Of a DNA stretch of 64,000 bases, positions 22,153 to 52,245 are shown in pieces. The notes beneath the pieces were generated by a model, which worked only from the letters and a program-made list of their open reading frames with translations, made no database searches and was not told the origin of the DNA. Numbering within the stretch: the first letter of the stretch is position 1; each line of letters starts with the position of its first letter. Source of the stretch: Epiperipatus broadwayi (lineage: Eukaryota; Animalia; Onychophora); assembly GCA_028023455.1 (NCBI GenBank), contig JAQFVV010000009.1:10292001-10356000 (forward strand), written 5' to 3'. The translations under genes and the position numbers were made by a program.

Positions 22153-22840
22153 ATTAATATGGATGTATAGAAAATAGAATTTATAAGTTAAATTAAGTTG
22201 ATAAATTTAAAAAATAGAATTTATAAGTTAATTAAGTTTATAAATTTAAATATACCTTTTGCAATACCTTTTGCACGACTTTAATATTAAATAGATCGAA
22301 ATTGTGGCCTGATTCTAATTCATTTTTACTTAAAAATTAAATAATTCTTTTTTTTTAAATGAAAAACAGTATCTAATATATTTTTTTAGATACCCAGATA
22401 AGCTATCATTAATCCAATATCACTAATTCAAAAACTTCAATTGCAAAGTACAATTTTGATTTATTGGTATAATTAATTTCTGTAAAATAAAACATTTTGA
22501 GCAGACATAAATATAAATATTTTCTTTATTGAATGCAAAAACTATTTCAATATATAAATACTACTGATAATAAATTAATGTTTATTGAAAAATTTTAATA
22601 GACTTTGGTTTAAGAAGGAAGCAAAGCCTTGTTGCTGAAATTAAAAAAAATCATAAATCCCAAAAAATCATGCATTTAAACTTCTATTTTATAATATTTG
22701 ACTGCAAGTATAATGTATATACTGAGCTTTAGATGCAATTAGAGGAGATTTGAATGTAAATTTTCAAACTTCCTCAGCTACCCCACTCCGTCTTATATAA
22801 TGAATACATATAACCATATACGTGAAAAAGGTAAATGATC

Positions 22841-22884
22841 TCCAATATATCTATTTGGTGCTAAACTAGCACTCATCAGTTAGT
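22841..22884 (-). ncRNA. Type I hammerhead (HH-470 family), G12C-mutated
   Basis: ACTAA-CTGATGA-GTGCT(AGTTT)AGCAC-CAA-ATAGATAT-A-TTGGA. Confidence 0.8.
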
Positions 22885-23544
22885 CCAGGTAATCATCTCC
22901 ACACATATATGTAATCAGTGCTCATTTTATATTAAGATAACAAATCTTTAAATTTTAATGGTCAGGCTTTAATTAATTTTCTACACCCTCCAACTCTTCA
23001 CCCATCTATATTATTGAAAATCTGATGACAGAATGATCAAAATCTTTATTGATGCCAATATTGTTTCCATACCCATGTTGACTTTAATTCATTTTGATCT
23101 CTCATATATAATGTCCATTTAAATATATAGGAGGGTTGGGCAGAATTCGGGCTGAAACTGTAATATTTGACTACAAGTATAATGTATGTGCTCAAACCCA
23201 CTCTAATTATATCTAAAGTCCAGTATATCAGTATATACATTATACTTGAAGTCAAATATTAACATTTAGTCTGAATTCTGTCCTTCTCACTTCTGTATAT
23301 TTAAATGGACATATTAAAGTCCTATATATGAGGGATCAGAGTGACCTAAAGTCAATATGCATATGACAACAATATTTGCATCAACAAGGGCTTTGAGCAT
23401 TACACCATCAGACTTTCAGTAATATAGATAGCTGAAGAGTTAGGGAGTGGAAAAGATTGAAGCCCGTCCATTAAAGTTTAAAGATTTATTATCTTAATAT
23501 AAATTGATCACTGATTATATATGTGTGTGGAAGATGATGATCTG

Positions 23545-23588
23545 ACCAAGTGAGGAGTGCTGGTTCAGCATGAAATATGTATGTTAGA
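23545..23588 (+). ncRNA. Type I hammerhead (HH-470 family), degenerate
   Basis: ACCAA-GTGAGGA-GTGCT(GGTTC)AGCAT-GAA-ATATGTAT-G-TTAGA; C3G and H17=G. Confidence 0.75.
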
Positions 23589-26500
23589 GATCATTTATCT
23601 TTTTCACATGTATGTGGACATGTGTATCGGTTATATAAGATGGAGTGGATGGCTGAAGAGATTTTGAAAGTGTGTCCAAATCCCCTCTAATTTCTATTCT
23701 ATTAAATTTTATGAAACATATGAATAAGGATATCTGAGATGTTTATTTCATGTATTTATTTAATATAGATGATATCATGTGATATGAGTGAAAGGAATTT
23801 GGTACTTGTAGATTACTTTGAAATAACATTGTCTTTTATTAAAAAAATATTAAATGTTTAGTGTTATTTATCAAATCCAATATTTGAACTCTAAACAAAC
23901 AAGTCATTACATTTTTATTTTAAATATTTTTTTGCATTTGTTGAGCATGAAAATGTAGCATCAGAAGTGCTGTGAGTTAAACTACAATCTCACACTTTAT
24001 GATTCTGTTTATCAATTAATTAAAATTGAATTGCTTCAGTGTATTTAAGACAAACCATGACTTGAAACTCAAATCAAGGGTGGGGACAAAAGATTTTTTA
24101 AGAGCCAGTTATGCCTTTTAGGAAAGCCCAAAATATTTTCAGGAAATTAACTTGTCATTTTAGCTGGCTATTTAATTAGTTATTAAATTAATAGCTAATT
24201 TTTTTAAATGTGAGATAAAAATCTGAGGATAATTTAGGTTGAGCAAGTTTTTTTTTTTTTCAAAATAATCTTTATTTGCACAAAAAGTAAAATATACATT
24301 GTAAAATAGAGTTCATGTTTACAATCATGACTGAAACATTAAAGACTAATTAGTTATTAAATTAGATGATGATTACAAGATTAAAAGTAAACTTTTATGT
24401 TATGTTACTTATCAAAAACAATTTATTAAACAAGAAAAAAAATTGTTACAATTGTTAAATTAAATTTACATCACTTTGAACTAAACTGTTTTTTGCTTCA
24501 AAGAAACTACTCTGGTTCTACTCCCAAACAAGTTCTTTTCTTGTAATTTCGGAATATGCTTTGAAAAATTGTTTATAAAAAAAAAAGTACCTTATTCCAC
24601 GTGTTCTGAAATAAATTTGAAGGCGTGAGCATTTTGACTCTGTCTTTAATTTTTTTTATTACACCAATGTCAGTAAAAAACAAACAAACGTTTTTATGTG
24701 TATAATATTATTTCTAGATAGAGAGATATCGTGTAGATACTGAGCTTATAATTTTTGCCTTTAATATTTATTCAATCTGTGCTGCTTATTGATCTTATCA
24801 TACTGTGTTTAATATAAATATGATTAAGGAATTAGAGAGGTCATCTTTTTTGTCTAATTTCCATTTTGCTCATTACTCTAATGGAAAAAGTAATGGATTC
24901 AAAATATAATGACTAATGAATTAATTTTTAACTAAAGTAAATAAACAAGAAACATATATTTGATTAATTTATTACATCTGTTGAGCTTATCCTATCACTT
25001 TGATGTTTAAATGTCACATGCCCTTTCAAGCAGCTATATGTAATTAAGTTTTTCTTGCCCTTTATAGGTTGATTTTGTGTAAATACTGGAGCTCAAGGCC
25101 CATGGATCATAATTCTGTTCTGTCATTTCAATTCGAACAATTCTCAAAATCGCCCCCCCCCCTTGAAATTGGAAACCACTGCTTCAATACATTAATTTTA
25201 TTTTAGACTCAGTTGTTATTTTTATGATTCATATCGCGTTGAGTTCCTTTCCATTATCGTATTCCACAAAACAAGGCCACATTTTTATAATATTTATTTT
25301 TCTTATCGATTTTTTTATTTTCATCTTAAATGCTCAGGTAAATTAAATAGTTTTTTAATTCAGTGAACTTATTTTCAATTTTGACCTAAATATATGATTT
25401 ACGTAAATTAAATGCAAATTAAAATTTCATTTTTTTTTAATGTATGCACATTGACGAAATAATCTGTTTTGATTTTTCTTTAATAGTTCTATTTACTGCT
25501 GATTATCTAACTAAATTATAGGTTACACTCTTCAATTTACTATAAATGTTTTGTAATTAGATTCATTTTTGCTTGACAAAATAATGTAAATATATACTGT
25601 ATATATACTTGTTCATGCGTGCATATATATATATATATGAAGAGTATAGTGATATAATGCATCTATAATCATATATATATATATCTATTTTCATTTGGAA
25701 ACTAAAACAAGAGAGAAAAAAATATAATGCTCTTACTATTAACAGATGATTAATCTGGTGAATTGATTTTTTGTCTCACTGTGAAGACTACAGATCTTTT
25801 TGCTCTGTAGTAGATTGTTTAAGGATACTCTATGCTTTCATTTATTAAACTCATAAATTAATATATATATATATTGCTAATGTTGACAATTCAGTTCAAA
25901 ACAGGAATCTAACATAGAACCGGTTTTTCACTGTACTGTATGTGTGACAATATGCAAATATATGATTTTTTAATGATATTCATGCATAATATTATGATGA
26001 TAATTAAAAAAATTCTGTCTATGTATATTTTTTTTATAATTGTAAGCCAATTACTGACATTTTATTGGTAGTTCCAGTCAACTAATAGTACTACTGATTG
26101 ATACTATTATGCTTTAAGTAGTTTTTCTTGTTTGCAATGATTGTTTAAAAGATTCTATTGTTGAAATTGGTTGACTTTTTGTACAATTATTAGAACCTGA
26201 TAATGTAGTTTCTAAATACCAATTACAAGACTTTTTTTTTTTTTTAGCAAATTACTGTTATCATCAGGTACTAATATATATATTCAATGATTTTCTCAGC
26301 TTATACCAATTTACATCAGCAACATGTCTTTACAATTTTAGAAGCCATAATGTAAACAATGAATCAAATAAGTTGATTTTAAATGGAAAATAACAAGACA
26401 GTCTCTTAGTTCTAATTTTTTAAATATAAATCAAGGCCAAATAATTATTATAATTTGAACCTTATGCAGAAGAAGAACAATAAGCTCTAAAAACATTGTA

Positions 26501-27974
26501 AAAGTCTGGCTAGTACAGTCTCTTAACATACATTTAATTTTACAAACTTTTTACAATTAAGTTTCTGGAAAAATTTATCATAGTACACATATATTATTAA
26601 TTAAATATGAATTAAAAGAGTATATTTGGGCTAGGAACAATTTCTAATTTAATAAATGATCAGTAAAAATCATTAATATATTTCTATAAAAGTCGTTTTT
26701 ATCGAAGTTGTGATTGCAGAACATTTGGCACTTGTAATCAAACTTTAGTAAATTGTTTTCTGTGTAATACTAAACAAGATGATTGCTGATTTAGCATAAA
26801 ATATACATCTTGGAAATCATCCATATTTTTTACATCTTATGTTTTAGGAACATGTGATGAAATAGAAGTTTGAAATATAATATATATGAAATTAAAGTAT
26901 ATCTAAAAAATATGTATATAAAGTTAAATTATAATAAGACCAGATAATAATAATTATAATAGAATGAACTTAAATGAAAATGATATATTTGTGTGTATAT
27001 ATATATATATATTTAAATTTTTGATTTTTATTAGTATATCTCTCAACCCCATCTCATTACAAACTCATCTATCAGTCAAAAAATATAGATATATAGCATC
27101 ACACATGTAATGTTAACACTACTTGGAATTACAAAGACATACATGTGCTTTTTAAAAATTCATTTAAGATAGGTCCAGAAGTAAAGAATGCTAATTTAGT
27201 GTCAGGTATTGCATTATATTAAATTCTTTATTGGCTTATCAGGTTGGTTTCATATTTCTATTGCACATTATCTTTCTTGTTCTATACATTTTTGTATTTG
27301 GTTAAAAACCTGTCCACTCACAATAGTATGATAGGCAATAATTTTGTTTTTAAGACCGGGATGACACAAATTCACAAACATTTAAAAGAAGTGAATGACA
27401 GGCATGCCTAGAAAGATGAAGACCATTGAAAATCAATTAATTGATGATGAATGAGTCAAACAAATATTGTTTATTGACCACTATCTTATTATTTCTTCAA
27501 AGAAGTTGTTAAAAATGCACAAAAATAGAAATTACCTTGTAAATCACAATTTGTTTCTGATATTATTATTGTGTAAGTGATATTGGTATATTTAACCATA
27601 TAAAAGACATTTTGCCTATTGATATTATACAGTATTTGATAGATGCTAGTGATTGCTTTCCTTTATACAGTTGAACATGATAAGTTGCTGTATACACAAT
27701 CAACATCTTATGTATTAGTAATAAGATATTAAGATAAAACAAAAAACAACAACAAGGCAAAATAGAAAAAATATATAATAAAAAAGGATTAAGGATTGAT
27801 AAAGAATTTTTATTAAAATTTTCATTGCTGTCATAAATATTGGTCATTCTGTTTTAATTCATCACAAAATTAAAAAAAAAAGCTTTTTCAATTACATTAA
27901 AAAGTTTAAAATACCACCATGATTTATTATACATTAACAATATATATATATTACTGAATGATTGATTCCTCTGG

Positions 27975-42512: not shown

Positions 42513-42584
42513 TGCATTGACCTGGAAGCGAACCTGGGCCAGCTGCTTGGAAGGCAGCTATTTTAACCACTAGGCCACCAACGT
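42513..42584 (-). tRNA. tRNA-Gly(TCC), probably pseudogene or decayed copy
   Basis: 72 nt ACGTTGGTGGCCTAGTGGTTAAAATAGCTGCCTTCCAAGCAGCTGGCCCAGGTTCGCTTCCAGGTCAATGCA; perfect anticodon arm GCTGC-CTTCCAA-GCAGC; 1:72 mismatch, T-stem A:A mismatch, A58C. Confidence 0.8.
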
Positions 42585-45474: not shown

Positions 45475-47950
45475 CATTCAGACTATCATAAGTTAGCATA
45501 TTATTTTTATTAATTATTATTCAAAGTAAGCTACTTCATTATAATCATGGGTTATTCTATGGTTTCATGACTGGTTCAATTTTCTTTTTGCATCATATTT
45601 ATACAGAATAAGAGTTCTTTACATTCTGCAGTTTTTATATAATTAGTTAAAAATAATTAGACTTTTGATAGTGGAGAAATAGTTATAGAGTAGTGAAAGA
45701 AATTAGTGTTAAAAAGATAAACTGTGATTCTCTGTGCCCTGAAGGGTATTATGCCTTTCTCATCAGTACTGATATCCATATCATATTATAATCATAATTT
45801 CTATTAATTAAGTAAATGCATACAATCATTTGACCAATCCAAATTAAATTGAGATCTTTAACATCTTGCTAATAATAGGTAGATACCAAATTATCCATCA
45901 ATGTTGAATAGCAAATAGGGATTGCTATAAGCTAACTACATAAAAGAAAACTCATAACGCTGTTTGGGGTATGAAACAACTTTAAAATTCACTCAATTAG
46001 ACTTGAATCCCAAGTCATTGATATGACAGGCAACTTGCACTAATCAATAGGATAACAGTATTTCTCTTTTTTTATGTTATACTTTGTAAATTAAATGTAA
46101 ACTAAAGAAATTAAGTAATTTTTTGTATGATAGTACAAGTCCATAATAAATCTTTATCATTTATTATATGCTAATATGAAAACTTGATTTTTATAAATCA
46201 TTTATATATGCATGTGTATGTATTTAAAAGTCATAATTTATTCAACATTGAAATCTTAATGATTGTAGCATTAAATACTTTTTTTTTTATCAACCAGTAA
46301 TTAAATATTAATGTAAAAAGATAAATTAAAAATTAATATTATTTCAGTTTTTCAAATATCAAACACTCTCTTATATCCATTTTTCATGTACAATTAAAAA
46401 CAAAAATAATGTCTTTAAGAAACAAATAAATTTGGACAAATGTAATAAATTATCTCAAAAATGAAATTAACAGAATTCAAAGGTTACATTAATTAATATA
46501 CTTTTGATAGTGTTTTAAATTTTATTCAGATTTCTATTACGTTTTGTTTGGAATTTAAAATTGCATTATTACTTTGGTAACTGATTTTATTTCTATATAT
46601 ATATTTTTTTCTATCTTTAAATATTAAAATGCTAGAAAGATTGAAAGGCGCTGACAAACGATCCTCTGCGATGATGAATATTATCATTTTGTCATAATAC
46701 TCGTTGCCAAGTTACTTAACAGAGAACTTAATATACATAGGAATCTATTCAAACTTTTTAAGTTTTAATATAGTGTTCTAAAAAGTTTTTGTTTTTTTTT
46801 TATTTCACTTGAAGAATGTTTATCTATATGTCTTTTAATATAATTTTTTATCTGAGCTAGATTTTTTGTGAGTAAGTAAATGATTGGTTTTCTGGGTATT
46901 TTATTATTATTATTTAAATAAATGTCCAATTTTTTATGAACAATGCATTTGATAAAATTCAATAAAGTAATCATATAAGGGAGCACTATATTTCCATTTA
47001 TATGACCAAATTAAGATATTTTTGTTTATTTTCCATACTTTAGATTTTGAGTTCTGTCTTTCTTAGCACTTAAACTGTACTTATTAGAAGATAAGATTCA
47101 ACATTAATCTAGGAAATATCTTCCATAGCGATTTCTTGATGCTTCCAGTTTTCTACATGCATTTCACACTTATGATTAAAGACATCTGAAGAAGGACAAA
47201 TGACATACTATAATATTACACATGGAATAAAAAAGTGGCTGAACTTAAATTAATGATTCTAAGTAATATATCTAGTAAGAAAGATTTATTAATCTTTAAA
47301 TAAGTTTAAAGTTTATATCAGACTTAAAAATGATATAATAATCATTAATGTAATAATCGATTTGTGCTCATTATTAATGTATTTATCATATTTATCTTAA
47401 GATATTGCTATTAAAAGAATAAATGAAAGAAGTTTGGCACTTGTAAATTGAATTGTAGGGAGACCTGTTTTTGAAGTGTTTTATGGCAAAAAATCATTGT
47501 CATGGACATAAACATATCTCTTGAAATGAAAGTTTGATTGATGGTTGAAAGATTTGGCTTTAAAAAAAAATATATATATTTTTTAAAGTATTGATGCAAT
47601 AAGTGAAAAAAAATGCTATAAATAGAGCATTGATAGGATCAGTATTTTGAAAAAACATTTTAGGAATTTATATTGAACAGACCTCATTATATATGTGTGT
47701 ATTTAAGTACTTATATATGTATATGAGGATTTTCTGGAGATTAAAAACATGTTTTTGAGATAATCACTTGACATAAGATTAAATTATATAAAGGCTGAGA
47801 ATAAGAGTCAAAATTTATGTTATTTACAATTGAACAAACATGGATAATTACTGGTAATATGTAGGATATATGAGCACAGACTTTAAGATGACCCATCACT
47901 CTCCACTCTATCTAATAATACTGATACACTCAAGCACATATATGCTGAAA

Positions 47951-48020
47951 AGATAAATAATCACCAATATATGTATTTCATGCTAAACCAGCAATCATCA
48001 GTTGGTCCAGATTATCATCT
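47951..48020 (-). ncRNA. Extended type I hammerhead ribozyme (HH-470 family)
   Basis: AGATGAT-AATC-TGG-ACCAA-CTGATGA-TTGCT(GGTTT)AGCAT-GAA-ATACATAT-A-TTGGT-GATT-ATTTATCT; intact core and long bulged stem I; U.U at 10.1:11.1. Confidence 0.88.
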
Positions 48021-48085
48021 CCCACACATATATACTCTAAGTGCTCAGATATATATTAAGATAGACAATCTTCATACTTTAATGG

Positions 48086-48129
48086 ACCAACTGATGATTG
48101 CTGGTTTAGCATGAAATACGTATATTGGT
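48086..48129 (+). ncRNA. Type I hammerhead ribozyme (HH-470 family)
   Basis: ACCAA-CTGATGA-TTGCT(GGTTT)AGCAT-GAA-ATACGTAT-A-TTGGT; palindromic stem III ATACGTAT; predicted cleavage after A48124. Confidence 0.9.
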
Positions 48130-48725
48130 GATTATTTATCTTTTCAGCATATATGTGCTTGAGGGTATCAGTGTTATTAGATAGAATGGAGAGTGATGGG
48201 TCATCTGAAAGTCTGTGTTCATATACCCTACATATTACATATATAGACACAGGTATAGGATAAGCCTGTGTTTCAGTTAAGAACTGGTAGTAAATTTCCA
48301 AAAGATCAGTTTTCTGTTAGAGGACAACAGATAATGATTCTTAGAAAAGTTCTAAAATGAAGATAATAAGATGATATTAAAAAGATATTAAATTATTATA
48401 GAAAAAGTGATTTATAGAAAACTATGAGGTGATGAAAAGGCTTTGCTATTTAGATGGTATTCAGGGGTGAGAATGATATATATATATTATTCTAATATTG
48501 GAATCCATTGTTGCAATAATTCTTGAATTTGAAATGCTTTAATAATTTTAAATTAACGAATAGTGGAAATATATATATATATAACAAAATAAATGTGTGT
48601 TATAGATACAATATGTAAAACTTTAATATGTGTTAGTATTAAATATGCACACATTATATAATTCGAATATGATATAGTGGACAATTATCTTGAACAATTC
48701 TATAAATAATAACAATTTATTAAAT

Positions 48726-48766
48726 CTCCAAACCTTTTCGAAGGCTTACCCTTCATTATCAAGAAG
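48726..48766 (-). ncRNA. Type I hammerhead, U3:A8 variant, in PLE 3' repeat
   Basis: CTTC-TTGATAA-T-GAAGG(GTAAG)CCTTC-GAA-AAGGTT-T-GGAG; perfect 5-bp stem II; two-copy consensus stem III is AACGTT. Confidence 0.75.
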
Positions 48767-50411
48767 TACAAATTCTCTTATCGTTTTTCAACGATATACT
48801 GATATGTAAATATTCGACCAAAACCGGGTGAAAATGCAAATTAGAATCAGAGCGCCTCCACTCGCCATTTCTTTGACAAGGCTTAAAACAACTCTCTTTT
48901 GTTCATTGCATGCTCATCTGAGATGATCAAACACACCTCCTTAATCTTCCTTCGCAAATCACTCTGCTCCCTACACAATACTCTTGGTCCATCTGGTCTG
49001 CATGAATGAACCACAGCCATTGCATGCTGCACAAAAATTGAAGGGTGGGATGAATCAGCTAAGGCCTTATTGTATGAATGCACATGTTTGGAATTATCTT
49101 GTTTGAACCGATGCTTTCGTCTCCCCATAATATGCAGCTGGGCAGTTGTTTTTGCTACATGCGATCTTGTAGACTGCATGCTGTGCTTGCACAGGAAGAA
49201 TATAATCTTTGGTGTTGTTTATACACCTATTCAAATTAGGGAGCAACCGAAAACACACACAGAACTCTGAGCAAAAGATCATGCACATTTTTCTATAAAT
49301 ACTTTGGGATATATGGAAGCAAAATTCACGGTTTATCTTGTTTACACACGTGATTAGACCCTTTTTTAAATTTCTCAATATTATCATCAATGGCTCGTTG
49401 GTTATATTGTGCCTTAATGAGCTCATTTCTATAAGTTTCAATATTGCTTATTTTGTCAGCTTCAAAACTACACAAGCAGTTATTTCTATGTAAAAATAAT
49501 TTGAGGCCAGCAAATTTATGTATATCTGGTGTATTTGATAAGTAATGTATATGGCCTCTGATATTAATTGGCTTAATGTTCATTTTGTAATAAAAGCGAT
49601 CAGCTTCAATCATTACTTGTAGGTCCAAATATTTAATACTGTTCGATGCTTCTTCCTGACTTACATTTATGTTAAGCCTGATGCTGTTATGAGGTCAGCT
49701 TTAATATCCTCAATGGTTTCCTCTGGAGCAGCTACAAAGATATCATCCACATGCCTAGCATACAGAACTAATCCATTATTCATATATCTAGGCACAATAA
49801 TTCATTCATATGCGTTCATTATAAGACTGGTGATGATAACCACTCATTGGAAGACCCATAGGCCAACCATTGAGCATATGATACCACTCATGATTGAAAA
49901 CTGCATAAATATTTTGGTTCATTCATTCTAGCAGAGCAACAACAAACTTGATCCGCTCAAGGTCCATTCCATAATTAATGAGTGCTTCTTTTACCACAAT
50001 GATCGACTTAGGTCTATCACTTGATCCATATAGCTCTGCTACATCAAGTGCAGTCATTCCTGTGTGTTGCTCTGGATGTACATTTTTCAATTTCTCAATA
50101 AAATCAAATGATGATTTGACAGAATACTCTCCATATCCAGTAGTTTGGGTGATCCACTTATTTATGATCTTGGCCACTTTATAGTAGTGTACTCCACCAA
50201 AGTTGATCATCAGCCTTAAAGGCACACCTTCTTTATGGGTTTTGGCATTTGCAAAAATTCTTGGGAAAGTAGTGACCGAAGGATACATTTGCAGGTATTC
50301 TGCCTTAATAAATGCTTTGAATGTGTGCGGCCTAAGCACAAACAATACGAATTTATCTTTGTTTAACTTGAAATTAATCTCAGGCACTTTTTGGAATTTT
50401 AGCTTGTCAAT

Positions 50412-50448
50412 TTGATAATGAAGGGTAAGCTTTCGTAAACGTTTAGAG
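50412..50448 (+). ncRNA. Truncated second copy of the U3:A8 hammerhead at the inversion junction
   Basis: TTGATAA-T-GAAGG(GTAAG)CTTTC-GTA-AACGTT-T-AGAG; 5' strand of stem I lost at the junction; A13T. Confidence 0.65.
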
Positions 50449-50829
50449 ATTTAATAAATTGTTGTTATTATTTATAGAATTGTTCAAGATAATTGTCCAA
50501 TATATCATATTCGAATTATATAATGTGTGCATATTTAATACTAACACATATTAAAGTTTTACATATTGAATAGTGGAAACAATGACAAAGTTCAGATTTT
50601 TTTGTTTATTCTCTTTGTCAAAAAAAAAAAATAATTAAAAACATGGATTTGCTTCTCATATTATCATATTGCAGATTAAAGTATGACTGTTTGAATTAAT
50701 TTCCATATAAATAATTGAAAGTCAGACAGAAGTGATTTATTTTTCAACCATATGTACATTTCTTTGCTGCTAAAGTATGTTACATCAATATAGTTAGTTC
50801 TGTGAAGTTTAAATTTATCATCCATGTTA

Positions 50830-52049: not shown

Positions 52050-52245
52050 TTTCTATCCACTTTTAGCATCTTGTGGAGGGATATCCGTAATCATAAACAT
52101 ACGATCAAAGACATGTGAAAAAGATCTATGATCCCCAAGATGCACATTTCGTGCTGAACCAGCACTCATCCGTTGCCCCAGATCACAATCTCTTACACAT
52201 ATTTTTAGTAGATTTTGTGATATTAAAGTTCCAGAAGTTACCATA
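52050..52245 (-). mobile_element. Solo fragment of the HH-470 family
   Basis: Flanks match the family (atgtgtaagagattgtgatctgg...; gatcatagatctttttcacatgt). Confidence 0.7.
52135..52175 (-). ncRNA. Type I hammerhead (HH-470 family), U4G-mutated
   Basis: CAA-CGGATGA-GTGCT(GGTTC)AGCAC-GAA-ATGTGCAT-C-TTGG; keeps the undecayed GCACGAAA and an AUC site. Confidence 0.82.

Follow-up and report, generated by a model that had tools for sequence, protein, structure and literature searches.

Which kind of element, and which mode of insertion, can account for a near-palindrome of about 1 kb that carries a hammerhead ribozyme (HHR) motif in each of its arms? The question is raised by positions 22682-23698 of a 64,000-nt stretch of DNA from the onychophoran Epiperipatus broadwayi (GenBank assembly GCA_028023455.1, contig JAQFVV010000009.1, positions 10,292,001 to 10,356,000 of the forward strand), which was analyzed at its full length and to which we refer as the window. 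The locus is an old and decayed copy of a known kind of element. Most probably, it represents one ancient insertion of a non-autonomous, hammerhead-bearing retroelement without an open reading frame (ORF), i.e., a retrozyme lacking long terminal repeats (non-LTR retrozyme) or a miniature Penelope-like element (mini-PLE), that was copied into the genome by the machinery of Penelope-like elements (PLEs). We expect no function at this locus.

The segment 22692-23692 consists of two head-to-head copies of a 469-bp ORF-less repeat, which comprise 1.07 and 1.03 units and are 78% identical to each other. A preliminary description of this DNA had reported a palindrome of about 1 kb in which the left arm repeats its own beginning 469 bp later and the right arm begins and ends with the same octamer, without a recognizable ORF and with a 7-bp repeat flanking the pair, and all of these observations hold. 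The inverted-repeat pairs I1-I5, detected in a repeat search of the window, cover 22692-23648; the direct repeat D2 places 22692-22723 again at 23161-23192 (91% identity, spacing 469); the octamer CTCTAATT occurs at 23201 and again at 23685 (spacing 484 bp); and the locus contains no ORF longer than 69 aa. The palindrome is imperfect: at its centre the right arm exceeds the left by 37 nt (23193-23229), which precede a shared block of 32-34 nt, and the central hairpin is formed by 23161-23192 paired with 23230-23261. The layout can be written as <[long end ... 5'] [5' ... short end]>, where "long" and "short" refer to two classes of 3' ends defined below, and its components are as follows.

22682-22688, no strand: left candidate target-site duplication TTCTATT, separated from the end of the element by TTA (22689-22691)
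22692-23192, minus strand: left arm, 1.07 units, with its 3' end pointing outward at 22692, which is a long end (...TCAAATATTA)
22692-22736, minus strand: one-sided 45-nt "tail", present in the left arm only, between the position of the short 3' end of the family (...CCTCTAATT) and the long 3' end (...AAATATTA)
22828-22897, minus strand: hammerhead relic of the left arm, recognized by a covariance model (77.6 bits, E 1.4e-15) and in the family alignment
23161-23192, minus strand: 5' terminal redundancy of the left arm, which repeats 22692-22723 and has 23230-23261 as its hairpin partner (pairs D2, I5 and I6)
23193-23692, plus strand: right arm, 1.03 units, no tail, extending from ...CAAACCCACTCTAATT to 23692, where it has the short 3' end ...CCCCTCTAATT
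23533-23601, plus strand: hammerhead relic of the right arm, recognized by the covariance model (77.0 bits, E 1.9e-15) and in the family alignment
23692-23698, no strand: right candidate target-site duplication TTCTATT, whose first T is the last base of the element

The GC content of the unit is 31-33%; that of the window is 26.5%, with a CpG observed/expected ratio of 0.21. In the region of the tail (22692-22745, minus strand), as well as at three further loci (L010, L013 and L054), a small hairpin of the form AGUAUA-N5-UAUACU or GUAUA-N5-UAUAC is conserved. Its folding energy is weak, with no clear advantage over shuffled sequence, and it may be the counterpart of the stem-loop located at the start of PLE reverse transcription. 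The central hairpin, in turn, matches several plant and animal microRNA precursor families of Rfam (23145-23276, 25-37 bits, far under the gathering scores). We reject these matches, which are also weak in E-value searches of the locus and of 20 loci, as an artefact of the inverted junction and its palindromes.

The repeat unit belongs to a large dispersed family. Homology searches were run against the 5.6-Gb assembly from which the window is taken, and the resulting counts refer to first-look candidates and are lower bounds. With the 469-bp unit of the window as the query, at least 6,730 candidates were found; for a more typical natural copy the yield was at least 8,823, and the best matches were just 84-87% identical to the query. 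The exact 27-mer CTGATGAGTGCTGGTTCAGCAYGAAAT occurs 10,618 times in the genome, compared to 0 occurrences of a control, and is retained by only 6 of 97 family copies, and consequently the hammerhead-derived modules must number tens of thousands or more. Pairwise identity among family copies is about 81%. The preliminary description left a choice between an old insertion and the copying of two different family members; the former alternative is the one that stands, because two copies from one locus (82%) resemble each other no more than copies taken from different loci do (81%), as expected if the insertion is old and its arms have decayed independently, and two different master copies are then not needed.

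In principle, the unit might be merely the pseudo-LTR of a coding PLE. The family-masked flanks of the first 30 loci have no sequence in common, and at these loci the unit is therefore not a terminal repeat of a coding PLE. The unit itself includes no ORF with a PLE-type reverse transcriptase (RT) and GIY-YIG endonuclease, which, together with the unrelated flanks of the same 30 loci, indicates that the element is non-autonomous. The data thus support the earlier proposal of a retrozyme-like family: a dispersed, ORF-less, hammerhead-bearing repeat of the retrozyme or mini-PLE kind. As a side observation, two copies on different contigs, L048 (G000:C12514) and L049 (G000:C22), have an unusual block layout and a ribozyme variant (GUGUUUGUUCAGCAU) in common and differ in their right-hand extent; their likeness may reflect a segmental duplication or an assembly haplotype.

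The mode of insertion is recorded in the architecture of the copies, which we analyzed by mapping 59 loci to one natural reference copy. Each block is a partial tandem of 0.1 to about 2.7 units (the longest at L035) in which the units join seamlessly, so that the head-to-tail arrays sought in the preliminary description exist, and the terminal redundancy is seen again at many loci. Adjacent copies form 59 same-orientation junctions, 38 head-to-head junctions with the 3' ends outward, and no tail-to-tail junctions (38 versus 0, p = 7e-12). The 3' ends fall into two sharp classes located 43-45 nt apart, namely a short end, ...CCYTCTAATT(A), and a long end, ...TCAAATATTA. In 21 of 23 inverted pairs, the window locus among them, a long end is combined with a short one (p = 3e-5). 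Target duplications were found around head-to-head pairs, namely CATGTATTAT (10 bp) at L008, AAAATATCTTTT (12 bp) at L012 and one of about 9-10 bp at L029, and the mean longest word shared by the two flanks is 8.1, compared to 6.0 in mismatched flanks. Since the duplicated target sequence brackets the whole pair, the pair arises in one insertion event. Long ends adjoin (TA)n or AT-rich DNA in 8 of 27 cases, compared to a background of 0.9%. Partner arms that are free of search bias (n = 36) are 50-1300 bp long and their 5' ends are unclustered (p = 0.2). The arms thus show no preferred 5' end, whether at the hammerhead cleavage site or just beyond one unit.

These properties can be compared with the known hallmarks of PLE insertions, which include partial tandems that make up pseudo-LTRs, a 5'-truncated copy that lies next to the 5' end in inverted orientation and a tail of 30-40 bp that is often one-sided (Craig et al. 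2021, PMC8557442). A PLE protein was shown in vitro to nick the two DNA strands and to extend each of them (Frangieh et al. 2024, PMC11167929); reverse transcription begins at two adjacent internal sites of the RNA, the tail being the stretch between them, and the template is envisaged as an RNA with several copies of the element (PMC11167929). The family displays the PLE footprint (PMC8557442; PMC11167929) in all of its main parts: 1) partial tandems of the pseudo-LTR type combined with an adjacent inverted, 5'-truncated copy, with the 3' ends pointing outward, 2) a tail at one end only, whose limits are two fixed internal sites at which reverse transcription starts, and 3) target duplications of variable length in AT-rich or (TA)n DNA. 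The hammerhead is located in the repeated non-coding part of the element, as it is in PLEs. The unit differs from PLEs in being non-coding throughout.

The conserved core of type I hammerheads consists of C3 U4 G5 A6 N7 G8 A9 followed by G12 A13 A14, an A15.1-U16.1 pair and a nucleotide other than G at position 17. We made a covariance model from 15 good (intact) family copies and scanned the whole window; the model has exactly one match per arm, on the minus strand in the left arm and on the plus strand in the right arm. In the left arm, CUGAUGA extends from 22879 to 22873 and helix II from 22872 to 22858, G12 is changed to C at 22857, and cleavage would ancestrally have taken place between 22846 and 22845. 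The core box of the right arm reads GUGAGGA, with C3 changed to G at 23550, and GAAA is found at 23572-23575; furthermore, G replaces A17 at 23583, A replaces G1.3 at 23586, and helix I lacks one nucleotide. The earlier claim of one type I hammerhead per arm is thus correct as to their number, but judged from their sequence both motifs are ribozyme relics with mutated catalytic positions, and the conserved type I core, which is present at the level of the family, is complete in neither arm. Moreover, with one sense copy on each strand, no RNA of unit length could be released from the locus even by an active ribozyme. A second CTGATGA on the plus strand of the left arm (about 23022) was considered and rejected; it has neither helix II nor GAAA, is not kept in the right arm and has no covariance match.

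In the family, AUGAUCU-GGA-CCAA pairs with UUGG-AGAUCAU to form a bulged helix I, the core box reads CUGAUGA, GUGCUG-GUU-CAGCAY forms helix II and is followed by the GAAA box, and helix III consists of 2 bp and a 4-nt loop, with cleavage placed after an AUA triplet by the family alignment. This is the type I topology, with three helices of which helix I is open; a centroid fold of the intact copy L054 recovers helices I and II. The type III topology, hinted at by the Rfam family RF00008, was rejected because position 17 would be a G in most copies. The sequence is GAAAUACGUAUA in those copies in which the CpG survives. Because the ancestral AUACGUAU is complementary to itself, two copies could pair into a stable helix III, and the ancestral type I hammerhead, with its 2-bp helix III and palindromic ACGU loop, probably acted as a dimer. 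A similar arrangement is known from amphibian retrozymes, whose hammerheads have a 1-bp helix III with a palindromic tetraloop and must act as dimeric motifs (PMC7229834). The dimeric hammerheads of amphibian satellite 2 and axolotl HHR_Amex1 (PMC7229834) share with the present family a very short helix III, a palindromic loop and a bulged helix I, whereas helix III here has 2 bp and a tetraloop instead of 1 bp.

Among the 95 copies that span the motif, both core boxes are present in 29 and 11 look fully intact, which is approximately what is expected from 10% neutral decay. In half of the core losses, an ancestral CpG has decayed so that G12 became A (GCACGAAA to GCACAAAA), which is the commonest ribozyme-killing change, and the loop variants ACAU and AUGU are likewise CpG-decay products of ACGU. 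Compared among genomic copies, the hammerhead region shows no higher conservation than the remainder of the unit, which fits neutral decay after insertion. The curated Rfam models detect no hammerhead in the whole window at the gathering threshold, none in the locus at E up to 10 and none in 20 loci at E up to 1; we suspect that the very short helix III explains these misses. The hammerheads of PLEs have been termed "atypical minimal HHR variants" (PMC7229834).

Whereas the anatomy of the locus, the family, the statistics of its geometry and the core mutations are observed, we infer from the published PLE model which enzyme acted, what RNA was copied and in which order the events took place, as follows. 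The RT and GIY-YIG endonuclease of a PLE, acting in trans, would cut an AT-rich target on each strand, with only a few bases between the nicks, and this stagger would give rise to the TTCTATT duplication. The 3'-OH freed on each strand would then serve as a primer within an RNA multimer of 469-nt units; reverse transcription would start at the distal site (...AAATATTA) for one strand and, for the other, at the proximal site (...CTAATT), which lies 45 nt upstream. The two complementary DNAs would extend inward for 1.07 and 1.03 units and would subsequently be joined head to head, after which the element at this locus would have decayed neutrally. The ancestral hammerhead of the family would serve to process multimeric transcripts of the source arrays. 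Priming downstream of the ribozyme, about 150 nt 3' of it, was anticipated in the preliminary description, and the fixed start sites indeed lie 109 and 154 nt downstream of the cleavage site. These two sites and a multimeric template would account for the whole locus, including the fact that both arms are longer than one unit.

On the evidence of its footprint, the family groups with the non-LTR retrozymes of animals, regarded as non-autonomous PLE derivatives, and the differences are minor. With the non-LTR retrozymes of metazoans (Cervera & de la Pena 2020, PMC7229834), it shares a short, AT-rich repeat unit that lacks an ORF and bears a single type I hammerhead, a head-to-tail arrangement, thousands of copies per genome and, where such duplications are present, target duplications longer than 4 bp. 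It differs from them in that its arrays mostly comprise 1-3 interspersed units, whereas the retrozymes occur in long tandem arrays, and in that the window copy appears catalytically dead. The non-autonomous MRC1 and Chlamys families of Chlamydomonas (PMC8557442) are likewise short and ORF-less, with pseudo-LTRs and multicopy insertions in head-to-tail order, and are presumably mobilized in trans; in contrast to the 469-bp family, the Chlamys examples have no hammerheads. The same description (short, ORF-less, multicopy head-to-tail, presumably mobilized in trans) applies to Xenopus retrozymes related to PLE pseudo-LTRs (bioRxiv 10.64898/2026.07.22.740005), for which the link to PLEs is sequence similarity to the pseudo-LTRs, whereas here it is the insertion footprint.

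Animal retrozymes have been proposed to be non-autonomous derivatives of PLEs (bioRxiv 10.64898/2026.07.22.740005; PMC7229834). This connection is of recent date and has been based chiefly on evidence from vertebrates, namely co-occurrence and sequence similarity. The 469-bp family provides an independent kind of support, namely an ORF-less hammerhead unit with the full PLE footprint at dozens of loci in an apparently AT-rich animal genome. There is also a practical aspect for genome annotation: repeats of this type make palindromes or hairpins of about 1 kb that Rfam scores as weak microRNA look-alikes while the ribozymes are missed.

Several observations weigh against an insertion of a retrozyme or mini-PLE by PLE machinery. 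The tail of 43-45 nt is slightly longer than the published 30-40 bp, and the unit of 469 bp marginally exceeds the 150-450 bp quoted for non-LTR retrozymes. The 7-bp TTCTATT repeat at 22682-22688 and 23692-23698 fits the pattern of target duplications yet is weak evidence on its own, given that a shared word of 7 or more is found in 30% of mismatched flank pairs. The best Rfam match of the intact copy L054 is RF00008 with 19.1 bits, compared to a gathering score of 48.5. Finally, an autonomous PLE that shares sequence with the unit was not found; the single coding PLE family that was sampled (12 loci) has no match to the unit at E < 0.01.

Among the alternatives, the one that survives best differs mainly in the form of the RNA template. 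According to this explanation, hammerhead self-cleavage followed by ligation produces a circular 469-nt RNA, and PLE-type rolling-circle reverse transcription proceeds slightly more than one turn for each arm. Arms longer than one unit, the seamless junctions in all tandems and blocks of up to about 2.7 units are all compatible with a circle, metazoan retrozymes are known to yield circular RNAs (PMC7229834), and the family seems to have once possessed a hammerhead of working appearance. Moreover, 174 tandem pairs with both core boxes intact and a spacing of 459-488 bp are present genome-wide in the 469-bp family and its sister subfamily, and these could release monomers. Nevertheless, no observation requires a circle, because a multi-copy linear RNA with internal initiation gives the same products, as demonstrated in vitro for a PLE (PMC11167929), and tandem genomic arrays capable of giving multimeric linear transcripts exist. 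None of the sequencing runs listed as containing the stretch is recorded as RNA. The preliminary description's notion that an arm corresponds to slightly more than a single circular turn fails as a rule in view of the broad range of partner-arm lengths and their unclustered 5' ends. We therefore regard a circular template for this locus as unlikely. We would assign a similarly low probability to the broader proposal that 469-nt units and the younger 410-bp arrays described below are processed to circular RNAs that serve as templates for PLE rolling-circle synthesis from internal start sites. If this were true, circular templates would directly tie viroid-like RNA circles to a defined retrotransposition machinery.

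A second alternative dispenses with an RNA template and derives the locus from events at the level of DNA, either a satellite-like short tandem array that was inverted and duplicated by fork switching or repair, or two insertions that are neighbours by chance. Replication errors can yield both tandem and inverted repeats, and the two arms are indeed as diverged from each other as unrelated copies. However, such processes offer no reason for the head-to-head orientation of all 38 inverted junctions at unrelated loci, the one-sided tails in 21 of 23 pairs and the duplicated target sequence that encloses the whole pair, and independent insertions would give tail-to-tail arrangements as often as head-to-head ones, which makes this origin very improbable. 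A foldback or MITE-like (miniature inverted-repeat transposable element) DNA transposon, with the arms as its long terminal inverted repeats, would resemble the locus in its near-palindrome of about 1 kb, its short flanking direct repeat and its lack of an ORF, but this hardly credible explanation is already contradicted by the family architecture, in which the ends are non-equivalent (...AAATATTA versus ...CTAATT), many copies are single-orientation or partial tandems, the inner ends vary in the manner of 5' truncation and the length of the target duplication is variable.

The preferred explanation, insertion of a non-autonomous element by PLE machinery, presumes a source of that machinery, and PLEs encoding RVT_1 and the endonuclease motif VYKIAC..C..YYGETK are represented in the genome by at least 34,375 first-look candidates. 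The window itself contains an internally deleted relic of a coding PLE at 48558-50579 on the minus strand, related copies of which (L060-L071) have a 556-aa ORF with RVT_1 and VYKIAC..C..YYGETK. A Pfam search with the short ORF pieces of the relic gave no match. The PLE family of this relic was considered as the autonomous partner of the 469-bp unit, but its 12 sampled loci have no sequence similarity to the unit.

Other hammerhead-bearing repeats are present in the window and elsewhere in the genome. A head-to-head pair of a sister subfamily is located at 47950-48019 (minus strand) and 48075-48142 (plus strand), the former copy having an intact core and 86.8 bits with the covariance model. 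The sister subfamily is homologous to the 469-bp family along the whole unit (L074-L076) and carries a compensatory change in helix I, from AUGAUC/GAUCAU to AUAAUC/GAUUAU. A distinct tandem family with a unit of about 410 bp (G000:C15:9132161-9133394; L072:1463-1944; L073:1474-1946) has only the hammerhead module of about 80 nt in common with the 469-bp family, and its helix III consists of 1 bp and a palindromic UGCA loop (GAAAUGCAUC|UUGGGGG), which is the 1-bp form known from the amphibian motifs. It forms 227 tandem pairs at about 400-426 bp in which both boxes and the CpG are intact, and some of its arrays have near-identical units. The 410-bp family looks younger than the 469-bp family and appears to be the better candidate for live retrozyme RNA. 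Two further relics of the hammerhead module were found in the window, one of the 410 type at 52121-52190 on the minus strand (67.3 bits, U4 changed to G) and a badly decayed one at 26760-26827 on the plus strand (24.5 bits). The sole Rfam match in the window at the gathering threshold is a tRNA-like sequence at 42513-42584 on the minus strand, with 33.7 bits compared to a gathering score of 29.

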